From Trichosphaerium sp. ATCC 40318 (taxonomy: Eukaryota; Protista; Tubulinea), in NCBI GenBank assembly GCA_038496445.1, contig JALMLS010000210.1, positions 62,001 through 126,000 on the forward strand: DNA of 64,000 nt. The letters are read 5' to 3'. A model generated the notes under the pieces. It did no database searches. It was not told where the DNA came from and was given only the letters and a program-made list of their open reading frames with translations. This document shows, piece after piece, positions 5,620-58,122 of the stretch. The position numbers and the translations under genes are program-made. Numbering within the stretch: position 1 is the first letter of the stretch; each line of letters opens with the position of its first letter.

Positions 5620-6285
5620 CCAATACATTTCTGTCCTAATAACCAGCCACATCTAGAGCTCTGTACAACATTGCGTGTTGAAAACAGCAGAAAAGTTGAC
5701 ATTGAAGTCAAGAATTGAGTAGTAATGAAAATATGAGTTTGCTTTAGTCAATGTACTGGTATCATCATCTAAGTATGCTCCTTTTATCATATGAGAAGTG
5801 AATAACAGCCGTAGGTACTCAAAACTAGAGTCCGTTGTGGCTAGAAAGAAAGTGTTAGTTCCATTCAAAAAGGTATATGTACCTTGAGTCGTCTTCAAAC
5901 AGCAGAAGTTGTTGGAATCTCTGATTCATTACCTGTGAAGTTAGTGAATGTCGTCCCCTTGGCGTTTATGGAACTGGTGGAATTATGTACACGCTTTTTG
6001 GATCGGAGTGATATGAATGGATCGTTGTGAGAGATGATGTATTGATGAACACTAAAATAAACGGTTTAATTTGCTTATTCACAAGAAAACTGTAAAGGCG
6101 AAACACGCAATAAATCGTTTGTTGTAGCTTTGAGAGCAAATAAAGCGCGATAAGCTTCACATACTGTTGACATGCTTCCAATATCGATGTAGACGCAAAA
6201 TTAGGTCGTGTACTAACCTGCCAAGCCAATATATCTTCAAGAATCTGTTTTTTCTTCACAAACAGCTAGTCTCAAGTGCATCAAA
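5620..6285 (-). pseudogene. Deleted, transposon-interrupted copy 1 of the F-box/G-alpha-like gene
   Basis: Matches the 3' end (about 11630-11820) and 5' part (about 13040-13450) of copy 2, joined across a ~1.2-kb deletion near 5890. Upstream homology resumes at about 11030, after the transposon. Confidence 0.8.
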
Positions 6286-6430
6286 GGAATTGACTCAGAT
6301 TATCGATAAAGTTTTCTATCGATAATTTTTTTGTCAGGTGACAGAGACGTCAAGTTTCCGGCTGTTTTACCGGCTCTAGAATGAGTGCCGGCCTTGTACT
6401 ACTGTACCTAATTCCGGCCATTTTGCCGGC
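6286..6430 (+). repeat. Left TIR and subterminal CCGG array
   Basis: Two ATCGAT palindromes in the TIR; CCGG at 6358, 6370, 6388, 6414 and 6426. Confidence 0.9.
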
Positions 6431-6480
6431 AGTAAATAAACAGTAAACAATAGATTATAAGAAAAACAGTGGCGTTTATT

Positions 6481-7971
6481 TCATTGTTCCTCATCATATT
6501 GTGGATGGAATTCGCTGTCTGAAGTTCCGTCACTGTCAACATACTGGTCTATGTCTTCAAGTTCTGTTTTGTCCCTGTCGTTCGCTCTAAGAGTACCACC
6601 ACGAGCAGCATGGAAATCAGCACTCTCTGATTCATACTTAGAGTAGTACGTTGATGTAGCTGGCGCTGTTGGGTCTACTCTATCCCATCGCTGTGTAGTT
6701 GGTTTCTTCAATCTCAAAGGTGAGCCATCGTATACATCTGCTGCAAATGACTCCCTTCTGTTGCCTTCATTATATTTTGGTGGACGACGAATGCTATCTA
6801 TAATAGCCGCATTACCACTTTCGGTGACAATTCTAGCATGATGTCTTGTATTCTGCTTTTTTTTTTTTTTTTCAGCTTGCTCTTTTCTTCGGGCCTTCCT
6901 TTGTTTTCTCTCATCTTCAATTTCTTTTTCTCTTGTCTTTACCCTACCAGCGAGTTTACGGTTATGCTTTTGTACACTCTTCAAGGAATTATTAATGGCA
7001 CCAAGCTCATCCATGCGTTTTTGTAGCTCTAGTTCAGTGGGCGGTAGTCCTTCAGGGTTTGCAACAGGCCTCTTACAAAAATCAAGAGTATCAGCCTGAT
7101 ACTTAGCAAACATAGCAATTCGTTGTCGTTTAGCTACAAAAACTCTGAGAAAGAATACAAAAAAAATGTACTTACGCCTATCGCTGGGGTTACACCGAGT
7201 CTTGGACATTTTGGAGATACATATTGATAAAAATCGATTGTACTGTGAGTATTTGAATTCCACATCCATAAGTATATCAGTTACACGCTCTGCTAATTTA
7301 TCGGCTTCTTGGTCTAAAAATAGGAGATCAACAAAAATTTATAAATTTTTACTTCATACTATTATTTGGTACGTCTCTCGCTAGTTGATGATTCAAGTGT
7401 TGCACAACAGTTGTATCATTAAAGACATTGTACGGTTCTGAAAAATCTGTGTGAGTTGGTGGACGTGTTGTTGTTTTCTTTTTTGGGAGTGGTGGAATTG
7501 CAGTTTTTGGTTCAGTTTGTTTTGCCGGTATACTTTTGGTTGGCGTGCTGTTGTTTGAGCGTGGACATGGTAACTGTGTGGAATTAGTTGTTGTACTTCG
7601 TAAGTGTACTTGCGTTGTGTTTGAGTCGATATGCACGAAAACGGTACTTCATTTGGGCATGACCAATTGGTACACACTGAAAGTACGCGGAAAAGTATAA
7701 CGCTATCTTACCCCAGAAACCTAATTTGTGTGTTAGGTGAGCCGCAACTTCTGTTAATACCTTTATTAATATCTTTAAGAGGTCCAGTGAGAGCAGCATG
7801 TATCCATCGATAGTGATGTTGTTTCAGCTTTTTTATATCTTCAGCAAGAGCGTTGTAGTTTACTGCTGGTGAACCATTTGACTGAACATCGTATTTACGA
7901 AAGATAGATTGAACAAGGTTACACAGTTCATCATCTGTTTGCTCTTTTGGTTCATCCTCAGGTTTTTCCAT
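6481..7971 (-). CDS. Transposon gene A: multi-exon hypothetical protein with a Cys motif, coiled coil and basic stretch
   Basis: ATG at 7971. ORFs 7708-7971, 7393-7677/7349-7636 and 6481-7269 can be joined through short GT-AG introns (e.g. KG-FW-VCTNWSCPNE). K/R/E-rich coiled coil. Exon structure approximate. Confidence 0.7.
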
Positions 7972-8045
7972 CGGAAATTTATAAATTTGGTGAACTCAAA
8001 GACAAATTAGGTAATCTAGTGCCCACGCTTTGTTCCATTTTTGCT

Positions 8046-8958
8046 ATGAACAAACTGTGGACACTAGATTACGTGTCCAATTGGAAGTGTCACGCACAAA
8101 CAGGAGTTCCTAAATGGGCACTAAAGCATGTCTATTACAAATACTTGGTAAAGACAAAGTATACTCAACGTGAAATGTATCTGGTATATAGATACATTCA
8201 TGCGTACCCAACTTGGCGTAGATTGGATGAAATTGGAGTAAAGTCACAGCCATATTTTCTTGAAAACTTGGTTCCGTTGATGCACTTGATGGGAGAAGTC
8301 CTAGATGAGATTATTTGGGAAGAACGTTTGTAAGTTCACAACACTTTGCAACTTTATAAATTTATTTTCTAGAAATCCCTTCAATCATGGGGAACACTTC
8401 CCATACAGAGTAACATGTATTGTAGATACATTACCTGTGCGCATAAACAAACCAAGCTTGTCCGCTATTCGCTCCCGATTTTATTCGGGTAAATATAAAG
8501 ACTGTGTTGTGAAAGTACTCCTCGGAGTTTCTTTTTTAGGCACTATCTTAGTCTTCTCTTCTCCTCATTTGGGTACGCTGTGGGACGGGTATATATGGAA
8601 TAATGCCATAGCAACACATCCAACCTTTGATTGGGAGGTATTTCTAGGTGACGGCGCCTTCAATGTGATTCCGGGCAACGAGCACTTTGTTCTACCCTAT
8701 TCAACTGGTAGGACAAGAATACCACTCACAAGGGCGCAAAATCGCTTTAACGCATTGATGCAAAACTATCGTGGACGTGTTGAGCATGTGAATGGGTATT
8801 TCGATAGACACGGAATGTTTAAGCAACGTTTTCGCGGAACATTGTACGTGTTGGAGTCGTGCTTGTATATTACAGCACATACATCCAACATAGTTCTAAA
8901 GCGGCGACTTAGATACAATCCTATTGGTCCCTGGCCTCACCACGAATGTGCACAATAA
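8046..8958 (+). CDS. DDE transposase (DDE_Tnp_4, Harbinger/IS5-like), ~289 aa, one intron at 8330-8372
   Basis: Splicing gives WEERL-NPFNHGEH in frame. Motifs CIVDT, FYSGKYK, LWDG, LGDGAF and FN..MQNYRGRVEHVNGYF provide an intact D-D-E triad. Confidence 0.92.
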
Positions 8959-8995
8959 ACAATGTGTTCACAAAAAATTGATAAATTTATTTATT

Positions 8996-10220
8996 TTAGT
9001 TTGTCATATTTACATCTGATGAAGTATTTGAGTAGGTTGTATTAACTACATACCTCATACTTTGTTTTCGTGCTTCTTCTTGGTGTTCTTGTCTTGCTTC
9101 TTCTCGTTGTTTACGTTCTTTCTGCTGTTGATACATTTGCATATTCATACGCTCAAATTCATCTGGTGTTTGGGGAAGTTGTGGTGGTGGTTGACCTTGC
9201 TGTTGCACTCTTTCCATCTCCGCAGCTTGTTTTTGAATAGCTATTTCCATTTCTGCTGCAAGTTGTCGCTCTTCTTTTTGCTTTGTCTCAGCTAAAGTGT
9301 TAAGCAAAAAAAGTGATAAATTGATAAATTTATCACAGCGAACTTACTTCTATGGTTGCTGTATTTAATAGCAAGTTCTCGTGTTGGTCCTGGTGATGAG
9401 TGTGCTAAACTGTGAGTAAGTATAATATTATACTGCTACATACAGTACCTCGATTATGCATTGACGGAACCTGTTTTTTAGCACTTCTTTTTATTGCAGT
9501 GTTTCCGTGCCGTATAAGTTTCTGTATCATTTCGTCTGTTTGAAGACACAAGATAGTAAGTAGTTGTGCTTCATACTTTTCTGCGTTTTCTTGTCCCGTT
9601 GTAAGCACTTTCTTGCATACTTGAAGATCGGCTTCAAGAATAACAGGTACATTTGGAGCTTCGGTGCACCCATCTGGTAGTATTGGCTCTGTTGCAAATG
9701 CTGCCATGCATCCTTTACGCCCACCTGGCCATGTCCAGTTGTCAAAGCGTTTTCCAAGGTACAATACAACTCGCTGAAAAAAGTCAATTTGAAGAAATTG
9801 ATAAATTTATGACGTACTGCATCAGAAGGTAGTACACATTTATCAACGTGGTACCGTACCAATCCACCTCGTAGCGATTTGGGCTTAAAGTACGCAATTG
9901 TAGTTGAACTACCCATACGAAACGCATAGCCTATGAACACGTTGACTCTAACACCGTCAACACGTAAAAATGCAATAAGATCTCCAGTATGGCATGCTTT
10001 TGGGTTTATTATATCAAACCAACTCTCAAAAGGTACGCTTGAATCAGCTTCTATTGGTTCTGTGGTAGTTTCCGCGTGACTTGACAGTTCTGGGTCGCTA
10101 ATCTATTGTGATAGCGTTAGAAATCGAAACTGTGAATTGTGAACGCACGAGATTAGCAGCAGACATGAACGCTGCCATATCTAAGGGGTTTTTGGATTCC
10201 AAGTCCGTTTGTTGTTCCAT
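8996..10220 (-). CDS. Transposon gene B: multi-exon hypothetical protein with Q/E-rich C-terminus
   Basis: ATG at 10220 (MEQQTDLESK). GT-AG introns join ORFs 9527-9940, 9405-9764 and 8996-9307; 3' end approximate. Confidence 0.7.
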
Positions 10221-10280
10221 TTGTGCTTGGTTATTGACTTTGGAAAGTCTAAGTTGGTAAACTGAGGTAAACAAACGAAA

Positions 10281-10843
10281 ATGGACCCATTATTTACGTG
10301 CACAACTCATCAAGAAAAGCTGCTATCTAAATTTCTGGGTAGTACCATTGCTTCCACTAAAAACGCACCAACTATTGCATCGTTAGTATGTAGCGGTATT
10401 ATAGAACGCTACCGAAAGATATACAATAATGAGGAAACTCGCAAAGCAGGTACTGTATTCATGAAAACTTTATAAATTTACTAAGTATAGTACCTAAACA
10501 CCTACTGCCACTACTTGCAAGCGGCTATGATGACAAAGGACAATCTTTGGCAAGCACCATTAAGCGAGGCAAAGCACCTTCTGATGGACTCATGACAATA
10601 CTACATGAGGCAGGGATAATACAACAGCTTGCTTTGGTAGAGATATCTGTCATAGCTGAAGATATCGAAGTGCTACCTATAGAACCCATTGGTTCTGAAG
10701 TTGAGAGTCGTGTAGTGGAACTAGAAAACCGACTCAGAAAGCTGGAGCTATACGCATTTGGTGCCAAGGGCGTCACATGGCTCAAAGAAGGACAAGGTGG
10801 TAAATTTGTACCCTCATCAACGTGGAAAAATAATGTTGAATAA
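10281..10843 (+). CDS. Transposon gene C: ~173-aa hypothetical protein, intron at 10450-10490
   Basis: Splicing joins ORFs 10281-10475 and 10547-10843 in frame (RKA-VPKHLLP); short coiled coil VESRVVELENRLRKLE. Confidence 0.75.
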
Positions 10844-10879
10844 AGGCATTTATTTACGCGCGTTTCTTTCAATTCCAAG

Positions 10880-11024
10880 GTGCCGGCAAAATAGCCGGTT
10901 TCTTGAGGTTCTATGATCCGGCTATATTACCGGCATAAAAAGTACAGCCGGCTTTCATTGATTTCCGTCACGTGAAAAAAAAAATTATCGATAGAACAGT
11001 TTATCGATAATCTGAGTCAATTCC
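10880..11024 (-). repeat. Right TIR and subterminal CCGG array
   Basis: Mirror of the left end; CCGG at 10883, 10895, 10918, 10930 and 10948. Confidence 0.9.
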
Positions 11025-11567
11025 AAAAACAAGATTGTCGATTTACTTCAATTTTAGTTTTCTCTCTTTCGGGTATTTGCGTCCCTTTGTAAATGCTTTA
11101 TCACGTGATAGGCTTTAGTGTAGATTATATCGCACGTGTTCCTGTTAAAACATAAGTTATACATTGTTTGGGCACCAATTAGAAGTTTTGCCTAGCAAAT
11201 TAAATGTTTATCAGACCTAGGACTAGCACAGTGTAACACTACTTCTTCCCCCAAGCTCAAGACAAGGGTGAGACCTGGCTTGGCAATTTTCTTGAGAAAG
11301 TAAGCCATCGACAGTGACCCACAGAAGAACATAGTTGCACGTTAAGTACTCGACTGCTATTGTACTTGGTACGTACTAATGCTTACCTTTTCGTCGCAGG
11401 TATATTGCTAGCATGGCGTCAATAGTAAATATGGGCTCTGCTGTTACAAACTTTTATAAACTTCTAGAAGTGCTGATCAATTTAAACGCTCAAGATGTCA
11501 AAATATGAGTAAGCATAAGTCTTTATTAATATTGGTTTTAACTTCGTAACAATTAATTCCATTTATC

Positions 11568-13488
11568 CTAATAGCCTAAAGCTGAGGAAAGCAGCATTTG
11601 TCTGATAGCTTTATCACAGTTGTCTTTGAAGTCAAGAATTGAGTAGTAATGAAAATATGAGTTTACTGTAGTCAATATATGGGTATCATCATCTAAGTGT
11701 GCTCCTTTTATCATATGAGAAGTGAATAACAGCCGTAGGTACTCAAAAATAGACTCCGTTGTGGCTAGAAAGAAAGTGTTAGTTCCATTCCCAAAACGAG
11801 GAGTATATGATTACCTTGAGGGCAATCTGGGAACTTCTCACAGAACTCAGTAGGTATTAAATGGTCGTCTTTGTAGATAAATATAGCGATCCTAAAAATT
11901 TGAGTTTTATCAAGGATGTTACACCACAGCGAGAACTCATGTATTGATTTGTGTAGTTTTGTGCCAAAGATAGGATCAGGTATACGGTATTCACCAAGTA
12001 CAATGTTGTAGAATATTGAGCAACAATCTTGTACAACATGGGAAGCTTTTCGGAATAGTGTGCGAGATATTGAAGGGTACATTTTAAATCTATAAAAAGG
12101 TATAAAGCCCTATCAATATCAGCTTTTGTTCTTACCGATAGCTAGTAAAGGAGATAATACTAATATAATCAAGAGATTTGTCAGTATGTAGAAGTGTACA
12201 AGGCATGTTTTCAATATGTTCTGGTATCACTATGTATTCTTTATCCAGTATCATTGAAGCAGCTTCTTCGAAACTATCACATTGTTAGTGAGACAAACAC
12301 CATGGCATCCAAGAAAAACCAGAAAACCCGTACTATTTGGCTCGCTCATCATCCTCAACATCAATTGTATCAAGGCCTTCAGCAATCAGTTTTTGAGCAA
12401 CTGAAGATTTGATTGCCTTTGCACATTTACTCTAGATATCATGTGTAAGTTGTGGTGTAAGTTTAAAAAGGTGTTGTTCGATACCTGAGGATTGTGTTTT
12501 GATGCCTTCAAAGTAACAGAAAGTGTGTACTTTTGAATACATTTCTTGAATGGAGAAAAGTCTGGTGTCACTATCGACCTTGCAAATCCTCCAAGACACA
12601 TGTGCACGTTGCCAAGGAAAATGACATCTAGAGTGTGATCTATCTGCTTGTTTACTGATTTAAGTTGTTTGTGGATTGTTCGGTCAGTTAAGTTTTGTTG
12701 TTTCATTCTTTTCTTCATGTGGTTTGTGTACTTTAGTTTGGGAAGTGTCTTCTGAACCGCGTATGGATTCAAACCGGCTTTATAATACTTGTTTAAAAAT
12801 GTATATGTTCTAGATCTGCTCTTGATAAATCAACAGTAAGTCATAAACAGATAATAGTAGAGTATCAAAAAAATAGCCCAACTTACTCTACTGACTTCAA
12901 AGAGCCATGTGAATTGACTCTGGCAATACTTCGCGTACGGCTTTGCTGTTTGTGATATCGTGAGAATACATTTGTCATCTAGAAAGCTTATCACATGCCA
13001 TACAATCTCAGTTGGTAGCTCTACATATCAAAGTTATTTCAAACAGCAGAAGTTGTTGGAATCTCTGATTCATTACTACCTGTGAAGTTAGTGAATGTCA
13101 TCCCCTTGGCGTTTATGGAACTGATGGCATTGGTGGAATTGTGTATGCGCTTCTTGTATCGGAGTGATATGAATGGATCATTGTGAGAGACGATGTATTG
13201 ATGCACACTAAAAGTTAAACGTTTTTGTTAGGCTGTCGCAAGAACTGTAAATCGTATAAAACACGCATATTAATGTGTATGCGGTATATCTTTGAGATTG
13301 AATAACGAACAAGCGTTACGTACTGTTGACATGCTTCCAATATCGATGTAGACGCGAAACTAGGTTGTTTTTTGACCTGCCAAGCCAATATATCTTCAAG
13401 AATCTGTTTTTTCTAAACAAACAGCTTAGATCCTAGTCTAAAGTGCCAAATCAACCTTTCGCAATACCAAGATGTCGTATGCTTCCAT
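11568..13488 (-). CDS. F-box + degenerate heterotrimeric G-alpha-like fusion, copy 2
   Basis: F-box FTELPTEIVWHVISFLD, followed by colinear G-alpha-like segments: DRTIHKQLKSVNKQIDHTLDVIFLG, DDERAKYFEE..ILDKEYI, QDCCSIFYNIVLGEY, KLHKSIHEF, IAIFIYKDD, FCEKFPD and C-terminal AIRQMLLSSALGY. Confidence 0.75.
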
Positions 13489-14393
13489 TACTTGACTGTG
13501 GTTTGCGGTATTGACTTTATTTGTACACACAAGATTGTAGATTTACTTCAATTTTACTTCAATTTTAGTTTATTTGCGTTCTAGATCACGTATTCAAATA
13601 AAAACACTAAGTTGTGGCTTTCAGCGCAGCAAAAACGAAAGGCTTTAAAATATTTGTTGCTAATCAGCTTTTATTCGAGATTTTTGCTGTTGGTGTAATT
13701 TACAGAAAAGCCACAGCACTGGGGTACACGTGGGGTTGGTTGACACTTGTTGGAGCTAATTACGAACAAGGACAACTCGAAATCAAGAAAAGTTGGCTTA
13801 TTTCGGTCACCAGAGCACGTGAACTGTGCTTTTAGCAAAATTTCGCTTTTTTCTTGAAACTGAATTTGCTGAGCATTCTCTTTTTTGTTTATCTCTCTAG
13901 AGACAATTTAGCCGTAAGTGATGTCTGATATCTGAACACTCTTTAAGTCTGTTAATTTGAAGTGCATTAAAGCAAGCGATGAATCGTAAACTGCCAATAA
14001 CAAACGTTTCCAATTACTTTGGTAGTGCAGACGAAATGGTAACCCTCATCATAGAAGAAAAAAAAGAAAAAGCAAGCTACTAAAAAGTATGTGCAAAAAA
14101 GAGATACAATAACGTGGTTACTTACCGAGACCTATTTAGTTGTTTGAAAAAACAAAAATTTTTGCAACAAAAAAGAGTTGTAAAAAAGCACTGAATGCTA
14201 AATGGGTCTTTCGAAAGCCCTCATTGTCAAAAGATGTAGGCCCGAAAATTTGAGTCTATTAGGACAATTTCTGCATATCTCAGTGCCCCTTAATTATGAT
14301 CCACTAAAGGCGCCTACAGTCAAAATATGAGTACATATAATTCTTTTATTAATATTGGTTATATCTTAAGTTGTAACATTTCGTTATCCCTAT

Positions 14394-16326
14394 CTAAAAC
14401 CCAGACGCAGATAGAGCGTTGACCATCATAGCATTTTGGAGAGCACCAAAAAAGTTGCGTTCGAAGTCAAGAATTGAGTAGTAATAACAATACGAGTTTG
14501 GTGGCACTGTGCTGTTTTCATCATCTATATGAGCCCCTTTAAACACATAGTTCAAGAACAGTAGTTTCAGGTACTCAAAAATAGAGGACATAGTGGCTAG
14601 AAAGAAAGTGTTAGTTAAAGAGCTTGTCCATTGTCCGTTCAAAATAGCAGGTTTGAAAACAACAAAAAAGGTGTAAAGGATTACCTTCAGGGCAATCTGG
14701 AAACTTCTCACAGAACTCACTAGGTACTATATAGTCGTCTTTATAGATAAATATAGCCATACTACAACCTTGAGTTTTGTAAAGGATGTTACACCACAGC
14801 GAGAACTCATGTATTGATTTGTGTAGTTTTGTGCCAAAGATAGGATCAGGTATACGGTATTCACCAAGTACAATGTTGTAGAATATTAAGCAACAATCTT
14901 GTACAACATGGAAAGCATTTTGGAATAGTGTGCGAGACATTGAAGGGTACATAGTTAACCTACAAAATATAAACACCAAATTGCTTACATAATTTTTCTT
15001 ACCGAATCCTAGTTCTTTCCATATCGCTAATGTATTCAACGGGCTTATCAGTATGTAGGAGTGTACAAGGCATGTTTTCAATATGTTCTGGTATCACTAT
15101 GTATTCTTTATCCAGTATCGTTGAAGCAGCTTCTTCGAAACTATCACATTGTTAGTGAGACAAACCATGGCATCCAAGAAAAAACAGAAAAACCGTACTA
15201 TTTGGCTCGCTCATCATCCTCAACATCAATTGTATCAAGGCCTTCAGCAATCAGTTTTTGAGCAACTGAAGATTTGATTGCCTTTGCACATTTACTCTAG
15301 ATATCACGTGTAAGTTGTGGTGTAAGTTAAAAAAAGGTGTTGTTCGATACCTGAGGATTGTGTTTTGCCTTCAAAGCAACAGAGAGTGTGTACTTTTGAA
15401 TACATTTCTTGAATGGAGAAAAGTCTGGTGTCACTATCGACCTTGCAAATCCTCCAAGACACATGTGCACGTTGCCAAGGAAAACGATATTCTGTATATA
15501 CTGCTGTTTTTTAAGGTGAGCATAGATTGTTCGGTCAGTTAAGTTTTGTTGTTTCATTCTTTTCTTCATGCGGTTTGTGTATTTTAGTTTTGAGAGTGTC
15601 TTTTGAACCGTGTATGGATTCAAACCGGCTTTGTAATACTTTTTTAAGAATGCATATGTGCTAGCTCTGCTCTTGATAAATCAACAGTAAGTCATAAACA
15701 GATAATAGTACAGAGTATCAAAAAATAGCCCAACTTACTCTACTGACTTCTAAGAGCCATGTGAATTGACTCTGGCAATACTTCGCATACGGCTTTGCTG
15801 TTTGTGATATCGCGAGAATACATTTGGTATCTAGAAAGCTTATCACATGCCATACAATCTCAGTTGGTAGCTCTAAAGAACAAAGGAACAAGGTTATTTC
15901 AAACAATAGAAGTTGTTGGAATCTCTGATTCATTACTACCTGTGAAGTTAGTGAATGTCATCCCCTTGGCGTTTATGGAACTGATGGTATTGGTAGAATT
16001 GGATCCACGCTTCTTGTATCGGAGTGATATGAATGGATCATTGTGAGAGACGATGTATTGATGCACACTAAAAGTTAAACGTTTTTGTTAGGCTGTCGCA
16101 AGAACTGTAAATCGTTTGTTGTAGCTTTGAGAACAAATGAAGAGCGATAAGTTTCACGTACTGTTGACATGCTTCCAATATTGATGTAGACGCGAAACTA
16201 GGTTGTTTTCTGACCTGCCAAGCCAATATATCTTCAAGAATCTGTTTTTTCTAAACAAACGGCTTAGATCCAAGTCAAAAGTGCCAAATCAACCTTTCGC
16301 AATACCAAGACGTTGTATGCTTCCAT
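14394..16326 (-). CDS. F-box + degenerate heterotrimeric G-alpha-like fusion, copy 3
   Basis: High nucleotide identity to copy 2 (offset about 2.82 kb), same exon layout, C-terminus ALQNAMMVNALSASGF. A small deletion near 16110 may disturb an early exon. Confidence 0.72.
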
Positions 16327-16890
16327 TACTTGTCTGTGTTTATGGTATTGGCACTTATTCACGTGAAGGATTTACTGCAATTTTACTTCAATAGTTTTCG
16401 CTAGGTTTTCTCACGTTTTCGGGTATTTCAAATTTTTATACGCCATATCACGTGATATACCTTTTTAGTTGCTTACATTGCTTGTATTCACTATAAGTTG
16501 TAGAAATAGCAAAACGGTAAAGGCTCAAAATACTGTTTATTTATTGCTCAGCTTTTGGTGATGCCAAAACTAGCATTGGAATTGAAACACCGTTGTACCT
16601 CGCCCAGTATCTCGTTATTTTGAAAGTGCAATCGAAAGGAGAATCTCAAACCAACAAGATACAACTGTTATTATCTCACTATGTCAAACACAATAAGTGG
16701 GTGGTATTAACATTTTTGCGGCTTTTGGTACGATTTTGCAGAATGATTTGGTATCCTGTTTGTTTGATCACGTGATTTCCGTTTACATGTATTCGTAATT
16801 TCAACATTCACATTTTTCTGGAAGTAGCAATGGTTGACCATAATAAACTGAGCGTTTTCCCATCAATTCCGGAACCAACGACAACTAGCC

Positions 16891-57072: not shown

Positions 57073-58122
57073 ATGGCACGTGTTGTATGAAAAAAAATAC
57101 TAAGCAAATTCTAGGATAAGGAACCAGGTTTATTAAAATTACCAGTAGAGCTTCATCTTGATATTTCAGACTTAGACACTGAAGTTTACAAAAAGTTACC
57201 ACTCTTGTGTAAACAAACCTCTCTCGTACGTTATGATGCGAGTCTATTGAAACATGGTCTGTGGGTTGCGACATTACAGGAGGTAGTGATTAAAAGCCAA
57301 CACTGGGATCATGGTAAACGGGAAGATCAATACAAGAGGTGGAACGAGAATGGAGAATTGCGGAAACAGATCAATTACGTTAATGGCAAAAAGCAAGGAG
57401 AATGGAAGAAGTGGCATGAAAACAACCAATTGCGGGAACAGCGCAGTTATGTTGATGGCCGAAGGCAAGGAGAATGCAAGAGGTGGCATAAGAATGGGCA
57501 ATTGTTCGAACAGTTCAACTACATTGATGGTAAGCGACAGGGAGTATACAAGAAATGGCAAGACAATGGGCATTTGGAGAAGCAGTGCCACTACACCGAT
57601 GGTAAAAAGCATGGAGAATGTAAGACGTGGTATGATGGCAAATTGAGGAAACAATGTAGGTATGTTGATGGCAAAAAGCAAGGAGAATGGAAGAAGTGGT
57701 TTGAAGACAAATTATGGATACACGACAATTATGTCAATGGTAAAATGCATGGCGTATGCAAAAGATGGTTTAGTAATGGCCAATTGAAGCAACAATATAA
57801 TTACGTAAACGGTGAAAGACACGGTGAATACAAGGAATGGCTTGAGGATGGTAAATTGGAAGAAAAAGGCAATTATGTTAATGACAAATGGCATGGTAAA
57901 CGCACAAAATGGAATAAGTACGGCAAATTATTAGTACGTTGCAATTACCAAAAGGGCAAATTACATGGGCAATACCAGTTTTATAACAACGGTTCATTAG
58001 TAGAAAAGCACAATTATTTTGAAGGTAATATGCATGGGATATGCAAGAAATATACTTTGAACATGTGGGAATCGACGCAGTGCAAGTTCATTCATGGTAA
58101 ACAGCAAGGAGAATGGGAGTAG
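57073..58122 (+). CDS. F-box + MORN-variant repeat protein
   Basis: Frame extends upstream of the called ORF to the acceptor at 57114: DKEPGLLKLPVELHLDISDLDTEVYKKLPLLCK (F-box-like), then about 11 MORN_2 repeats. ATG at 57073. Confidence 0.8.

Follow-up and report, generated by a model that had tools for sequence, protein, structure and literature searches.

Transposons of the PHIS superfamily have been described as elements with one or two genes, and the few exceptions carry a recognizable chromatin enzyme. The Harbinger elements of Ectocarpus have two genes (PMC12477816), and head-to-head pairs of DDE and MADF genes are canonical among nematode Harbingers (PMC13668399). In Harbinger3_DR, the Myb-like partner of the transposase binds a 9-bp subterminal motif (PMC9710019). 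Among the exceptions, HarbingerS has a SET gene, and each TET+ PHISTA family has three proteins, of which the third lacks Myb/SANT (PMC12730594). Regulation by an element-coded protein has been described for VANDAL transposons, where VANC binds short motifs in non-coding parts of the element and lifts silencing (PMC5735166). Here, we describe a transposon found in a stretch of 64,000 nucleotides from Trichosphaerium sp. ATCC 40318 (contig JALMLS010000210.1; the whole stretch is called the window below, and all positions refer to it). The element spans positions 6286-11024, is intact-looking, and has a length of about 4.7 kb. What is new is a four-gene PHIS element that represents a protist branch without a name and combines a very small transposase of 289 aa, three orphan proteins that we call A, B, and C, and a palindrome of its own.

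The transposon and its four genes

We regard it as almost certain that the element is a PHIS transposon. It is bounded by terminal inverted repeats (TIRs) of 47 nt, at 6286-6332 on the forward strand and at 10978-11024 on the reverse strand, which are 96% complementary; the left one starts with GG and contains two ATCGAT palindromes. The terminal 21 nt occur twice in the 64 kb, both times at the ends of the element, against a chance expectation of 0. Beyond the TIRs, the likeness between the two ends is imperfect and reaches to about 150 bp, including five CCGG units per end in mirrored arrangement. These lie at 6358, 6370, 6388, 6414, and 6426 in the left subterminal region (6333-6435, forward) and at 10883, 10895, 10918, 10930, and 10948 in the right one (10875-10977, reverse).

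The transposase gene (8046-8958, forward strand) consists of the exons 8046-8329 and 8373-8958, separated by an intron at 8330-8372, and its reading frame of 289 aa is stop-free across both. The protein matches DDE_Tnp_4 (PF13359) with an E value of 2.4e-13, its catalytic triad (D113, D188, and E232) is invariant or nearly so in alignments with relatives, and its C terminus carries a GPWxH motif. Exon 1 can also be aligned to relatives, and this alignment speaks for both the start codon and the intron. A HMMER search of cluster representatives returned 372 relatives at E <= 0.001, the best with 46% identity. The transposase falls into a clade of short PHIS-type enzymes, of about 280 aa, known from environmental contigs. 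The relatives that were looked up come from short contigs of JGI, ENA, and Logan and have about 250-310 aa when full-length, and none of these clusters has a named member. Viral contigs, GTDB genomes, and plasmids yielded no relatives; hence, a viral or bacterial origin is not indicated. The NCBIfam IS5 models scored far below their cut-off, and word-based homolog searches returned nothing even for the transposase, nor did they for B.

A quick tree of 100 transposases, made of unnamed environmental sequences only and thus holding no labeled Harbinger, Pangu, or ISL2EU references, places the query among short transposases, 51 of the 78 having a terminal GxWxH motif, with its own position lacking strong support. 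The 21 sequences without the motif form a separate group, and many of them end in Tudor-like, chromo, or Ulp1 tails. The Tudor-like tail is a conserved, aromatic-rich C-terminal barrel that has no Pfam name (P0070, P0071, P0094, P0097, P0114, P0119, P0121, P0127, P0128, P0129, P0133, and P0136). Other tails behind DDE_Tnp_4 in this sister clade are chromo (P0087), PHD-like (P0109), and Ulp1 (P0083).

The four genes form two divergent pairs, with A (reverse) and the transposase (forward) followed by B (reverse) and C (forward), the splicing being predicted from the DNA. Only 74 bp separate the start codons of A and the transposase (7971/8046) and 60 bp those of B and C (10220/10281), the convergent stops of the transposase and B are 37 bp apart, and 88% of the element falls between start and stop codons. 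A codon model trained on host open reading frames (ORFs) ranked the proposed frame first among the six in all 12 exon pieces, in a test partly biased because it favors stop-free frames. A search of Rfam gave no match. We think it likely that A, B, and C are without exception genuine genes and that the family has them fixed.

Several splice paths leave gene A (6481-7971, reverse strand) open over its full length, giving a predicted protein of about 400-460 aa. The ambiguity lies in its 5' half, where the second to fourth exons (from about 7760 to 7550) admit alternatives. The protein has a helical N-terminal domain, a P/K/T-rich linker, a coiled coil with a basic run, and an acidic tail; the basic run could be a nuclear localization signal. 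Four helices are predicted at the N terminus in a low-confidence single-sequence model, which is compatible with, and not evidence for, a Myb/trihelix-like domain. An identity as Myb/SANT is unsupported by Pfam, the ESM Atlas, the PDB, a fold search, or a profile of the partners of related transposases, the last being insensitive. What places A is its position. An ORF that is head-to-head with the transposase, with a short spacer between the two, is present in no fewer than nine related loci (L002, L005, L008, L009, L010, L011, L014, L017, and L019). Since this divergent partner is found across the clade, the left pair is probably the normal design of the clade, with A taking the place of the usual helper as an ordinary second gene and B and C being the only additions. 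One of these partners (L014:199-1101) has a SAM domain and another (L010:137-934) a weak match to it (Pfam E values of 3e-4 and 0.025; both genes on the reverse strand), in each case behind a short helical N-terminal domain.

Gene B (8996-10220, reverse strand) has five exons, a product of 345 aa, and four short, canonical GT-AG introns (10148-10103, 9817-9774, 9448-9405, and 9347-9292; predicted). Its protein comprises a small beta-rich domain, a helical part, and a Q/E-rich coiled coil, the beta-rich pattern of exon 2 coming from low-confidence structure prediction. Gene C (10281-10843, forward strand), with the exons 10281-10449 and 10491-10843 around an intron at 10450-10490, encodes 173 aa, including a short coiled coil toward the C terminus. 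Together, B and C look like an added cassette. Homology searches of the spliced genes were run exon by exon, and the Pfam scan covered ten exon pieces. Several candidate identities of B are not supported. A profile built from the 12 Tudor-like tails of the sister clade misses it. A B3 domain was suggested by a lone PDB match, RAV1, with an E value of 0.07 and is a lead only, since neither a further B3 structure nor a Pfam B3 model was matched. The likeness of exon 3 to designed ARM repeats is an artefact of summed weak repeats. The single-sequence models made from B and A are of low confidence (predicted local distance difference test scores of 49 and 62), and their fold matches are meaningless.

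A sequence-only reading of this DNA had described intact TIRs, an intact DDE transposase, three more spliced genes, and short spacers that leave nearly all of the element genic, all of which our analysis of the DNA bears out. It had also recognized neither a Myb/SANT nor a YqaJ partner among A, B, and C, and Pfam has no match for either. Its proposal of a new multi-component PHIS lineage needs to be narrowed. The PHIS type, the unrecognized gene set, and the unnamed clade stand. On the other side, the head-to-head partner is a clade-wide feature that probably leaves just B and C as additions, and PHISTA and HarbingerS had already shown that a PHIS element can carry more than two genes (PMC12730594).

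A private palindrome and a start-codon hairpin

A 14-bp AT palindrome (AAATTTATAAATTT or one-base variants) occurs at seven non-coding sites of the element. Five are in introns: that of A at 7359-7314 (site at 7335-7348), that of the transposase (8350-8363), introns 4 and 2 of B (9318-9331 and 9795-9808), and that of C (10466-10479). Two are in spacers, one between A and the transposase (7975-7988) and one in the gap between the convergent stops (8975-8988). The sites are spaced by 340-670 bp. In the other 59 kb of the window, which is intron-rich host DNA, the palindrome has no occurrence, and in Markov simulations (n=300) it appeared at most once. Its occurrence in forward- and reverse-strand genes as well as in spacers, together with its absence from host introns, points to a DNA site and not to a splice signal. 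We infer that the best reading is a site on which a dimeric protein docks, and we see a little better than an even chance that this protein is encoded by the element. The introns of B and C hold the palindrome as well, which suggests that these genes co-evolved with the rest of the element. A different palindrome, GACTTT-GG-AAAGTC (10237-10250), lies in the middle of the 60-bp spacer between B and C and is a possible bidirectional promoter element. Related elements have their own, unrelated repeat motifs beside genes (L010:2186-2248 and 2908-2970; L009:226-272; L011:2775-2993), suggesting that each family evolves a private binding site.

The start of the transposase gene has a second peculiarity. 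An inverted repeat with arms of 25 nt (8011-8035 and 8048-8072) spans 8011-8072 on the forward strand, with the start codon at 8046 on the edge between loop and stem. The predicted hairpin is stable, with z scores from -3.75 to about -4. No other repeat of this kind is present in the window, and the starts of the relatives lack it. It could act as a brake on the translation of read-through transcripts. Just upstream of the same start codon there is also a 16-nt stretch (8030-8045) that recurs almost identically at 10212-10227, both copies having a reverse-strand ATG in strong context. The ATG in the latter is the start of B; the one in the former, at 8038, opens a frame of 19 codons or, should a weak intron be removed, offers A another possible start.

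Possible roles of the genes and rival explanations

We favor, with moderate confidence, an explanation in which a PHIS transposon has A as its helper, B and C as an added cassette, the palindrome as a docking site, and the hairpin as a brake. Following established PHIS biology, the transposase would cut the TIR ends and insert the element by cut-and-paste into AT-rich DNA. Its head-to-head partner A would act in the manner of the Myb-like protein of Harbinger3_DR, binding the mirrored CCGG units and escorting the transposase. More tentatively, B and C may be an acquired cassette, fixed in the family and driven by a second bidirectional promoter. A dimer of A or of B might then dock on the palindrome and keep the four genes expressed or protected from silencing, and the hairpin over the AUG would damp the translation of transcripts begun upstream of 8011. 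These data suggest that the element may encode its own regulator. The sequence-only reading had suggested DNA binding, targeting, or anti-silencing as possible roles of the extra proteins; such roles are tied to no particular protein, and the element-specific palindrome is their sole support. That the palindrome serves specifically in anti-silencing seems to us rather doubtful. Similarly, we offer only as a speculative extension the idea that the pair B/C recognizes the palindrome and makes up an independently evolved, VANC-like self-protection against host silencing.

Several results weigh against this explanation. Searches of Pfam, PDB sequences, and the ESM Atlas, as well as fold searches, found nothing significant for A, and the same holds for B and C. 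A profile of the relatives' partners ranks A 503 of about 1030, even if this profile is insensitive, as true partners left out of it come in at ranks 2-89 with scores short of significance. Among the related loci, on contigs of 0.9-5.3 kb, there is no whole four-gene relative. Furthermore, the observed/expected ratio of CpG is 0.86 in the element and 0.87 in the host, with depletion in neither, and so methylation pressure is not indicated.

The element could instead have just two genes, A and the transposase, with B and C as passenger cargo, acquired in the manner of Pack-MULEs or left by another element and having no part in transposition. The palindrome would then be an end-binding or enhancer site of the complex of transposase and partner, derived from the core of the TIR, which by eye resembles it at about 10-11 of the 14 positions. 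The longer contigs of relatives agree with this, showing a transposase and one divergent partner and no homolog of B or C. Yet both genes are intact and compact, share a divergent 60-bp promoter, and hold the private palindrome in their introns, as expected from co-evolution. They are also unlike freshly captured host DNA, to judge by the modest evidence of the hexamer CACGTG, of which the host flanks have 65 copies (about one per 900 bp) and the element a single one, where 5.2 would be expected at the host rate. Moreover, in two relatives (L002 and L016) a convergent ORF follows the transposase stop at a distance of 100-125 bp, in the position of B, although neither ORF has sequence similarity to B. 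On balance, we find cargo without function unlikely, if a reading to be taken seriously.

It is less probable still that B and C are another kind of module for self-maintenance or targeting, such as a chromatin reader or a poison-antidote pair, and that the palindrome is bound by a host protein or acts at the RNA level as a branch point or 3' end signal. The recurrence of chromatin readers in the lineage, seen in the Tudor-like, chromo, PHD-like, and Ulp1 tails of the sister clade, speaks for it, as do the beta-rich pattern in exon 2 of B and the location of the intronic palindromes 9-26 nt before the acceptor. However, the profile of the 12 Tudor-like tails does not find B, and a signal of RNA processing fits poorly with a palindrome that stands in intergenic spacers and is missing from 59 kb of intron-rich host DNA. 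Finally, we may have miscounted the genes, part of A, B, or C being a chance ORF or A being two genes. One splice path through the 5' half of A ends after 95 codons, and an open frame at 9527-9940 competes with B, but canonical GT-AG introns of 35-56 nt link long, stop-free exons, and the frame test in 12 of 12 pieces and the genic density of 88% make such an error very improbable.

The element is a compact candidate for transposon-encoded, sequence-specific regulation outside plants, with three proteins, a 14-bp site, and a subterminal repeat. If the VANC-like role of B and C were true, these would be new protein families, delivered in a four-gene package of 4.7 kb with two bidirectional promoters. 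If they are mere passengers, the element is still a new family, of modest interest.

Insertion site and comparison with known systems

The element lies in a spacer within a tandem host gene family, whose units around it (5636-6267, 11497-13560, and 14319-16392) are 82-93% identical. It is flanked by AAA on the left (6283-6285) and on the right (11025-11027), the candidate 3-bp target-site duplication (TSD). The site is an A-run, and so a duplication of 3 bp, a shorter one, and none at all are indistinguishable. Both paralogous spacers hold about 75 bp at the junction that the insertion-bearing unit is without, leaving no clean empty site. Elsewhere in the window, at 78-794 and 57205-58122, there are intronless genes made up of repeats that by eye resemble MORN variants, a kind of gene known from amoebae and giant viruses. 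The short introns of the window and its gene content agree with a protist host.

Assignment to PHIS agrees with the features used in PMC4482050, as the predicted transposase is a DDE_Tnp_4 protein with the triad and the TIRs start with GG. The superfamily is marked by an IS5-related DDE transposase, TIRs that mostly begin with G or A, and a TSD of 0-3 bp at AT-rich targets. Within PHIS, what we see at this one insertion site agrees with none of PIF/Harbinger, ISL2EU, Spy, Pangu, and Nuwa as these groups are defined by target site or partner. We found no paper on a PHIS element with four genes in two divergent pairs, or on an amoebozoan PHIS element of such kind, in a literature search outside of which lay Repbase Reports and most subscription papers.

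The likeness to PIF/Harbinger sensu stricto (Harbinger3_DR, Pong, and Turmoil) is extensive. These elements share the DDE_Tnp_4 transposase, TIRs of less than 60 bp starting with GG, and a size of about 4-5 kb; their partner can be head-to-head (PMC13668399), and subterminal motifs are repeated (PMC9710019, PMC4482050). However, their transposases have 400-500 aa instead of 289, their TSD is TWA whereas the flanks at this single insertion are AAA/AAA, A has no match to Myb/SANT/MADF, and the element has two more genes. Pangu and Harbinger2 also have a transposase without extra domains, a second ORF without known motifs, and TIRs starting with GG or AG (PMC4482050), and they differ by a TSD of ANT, where AAA is found here, and by having two genes instead of four. 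ISL2EU and Spy share the GG termini and an AT-rich target, and Spy inserts beside AAA. Unlike ISL2EU, our element has neither THAP/HTH_Tnp_4 in the transposase nor a YqaJ partner, and the target A|AT|T is not seen; unlike Spy, which has a single ORF and the target AAA|TTT and makes no TSD, it has four ORFs and AAA on its right flank. The CWG or C|TNA|G targets and the Myb partner of NuwaI and NuwaII were not found here.

PHISTA and HarbingerS are comparable in being PHIS elements that carry extra proteins (PMC12730594). Their additional gene is a recognizable chromatin enzyme (TET/JBP or SET), whereas the ten exon pieces scanned here have no Pfam match to a TET/JBP dioxygenase or a SET gene, and TA TSDs and an origin in rust fungi are features of PHISTA. 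The VANDAL elements with VANC belong to another superfamily (Mutator), and the VANC domain (DUF1985/DUF287) has no match in the proteins encoded here. The VANC motifs are non-palindromic and tandemly amplified, whereas those of our element are single palindromes. Hence, the analogy with VANDAL is functional only, and it consists in a multi-gene transposon that keeps family-specific short motifs in its introns and other non-coding parts (PMC5735166).

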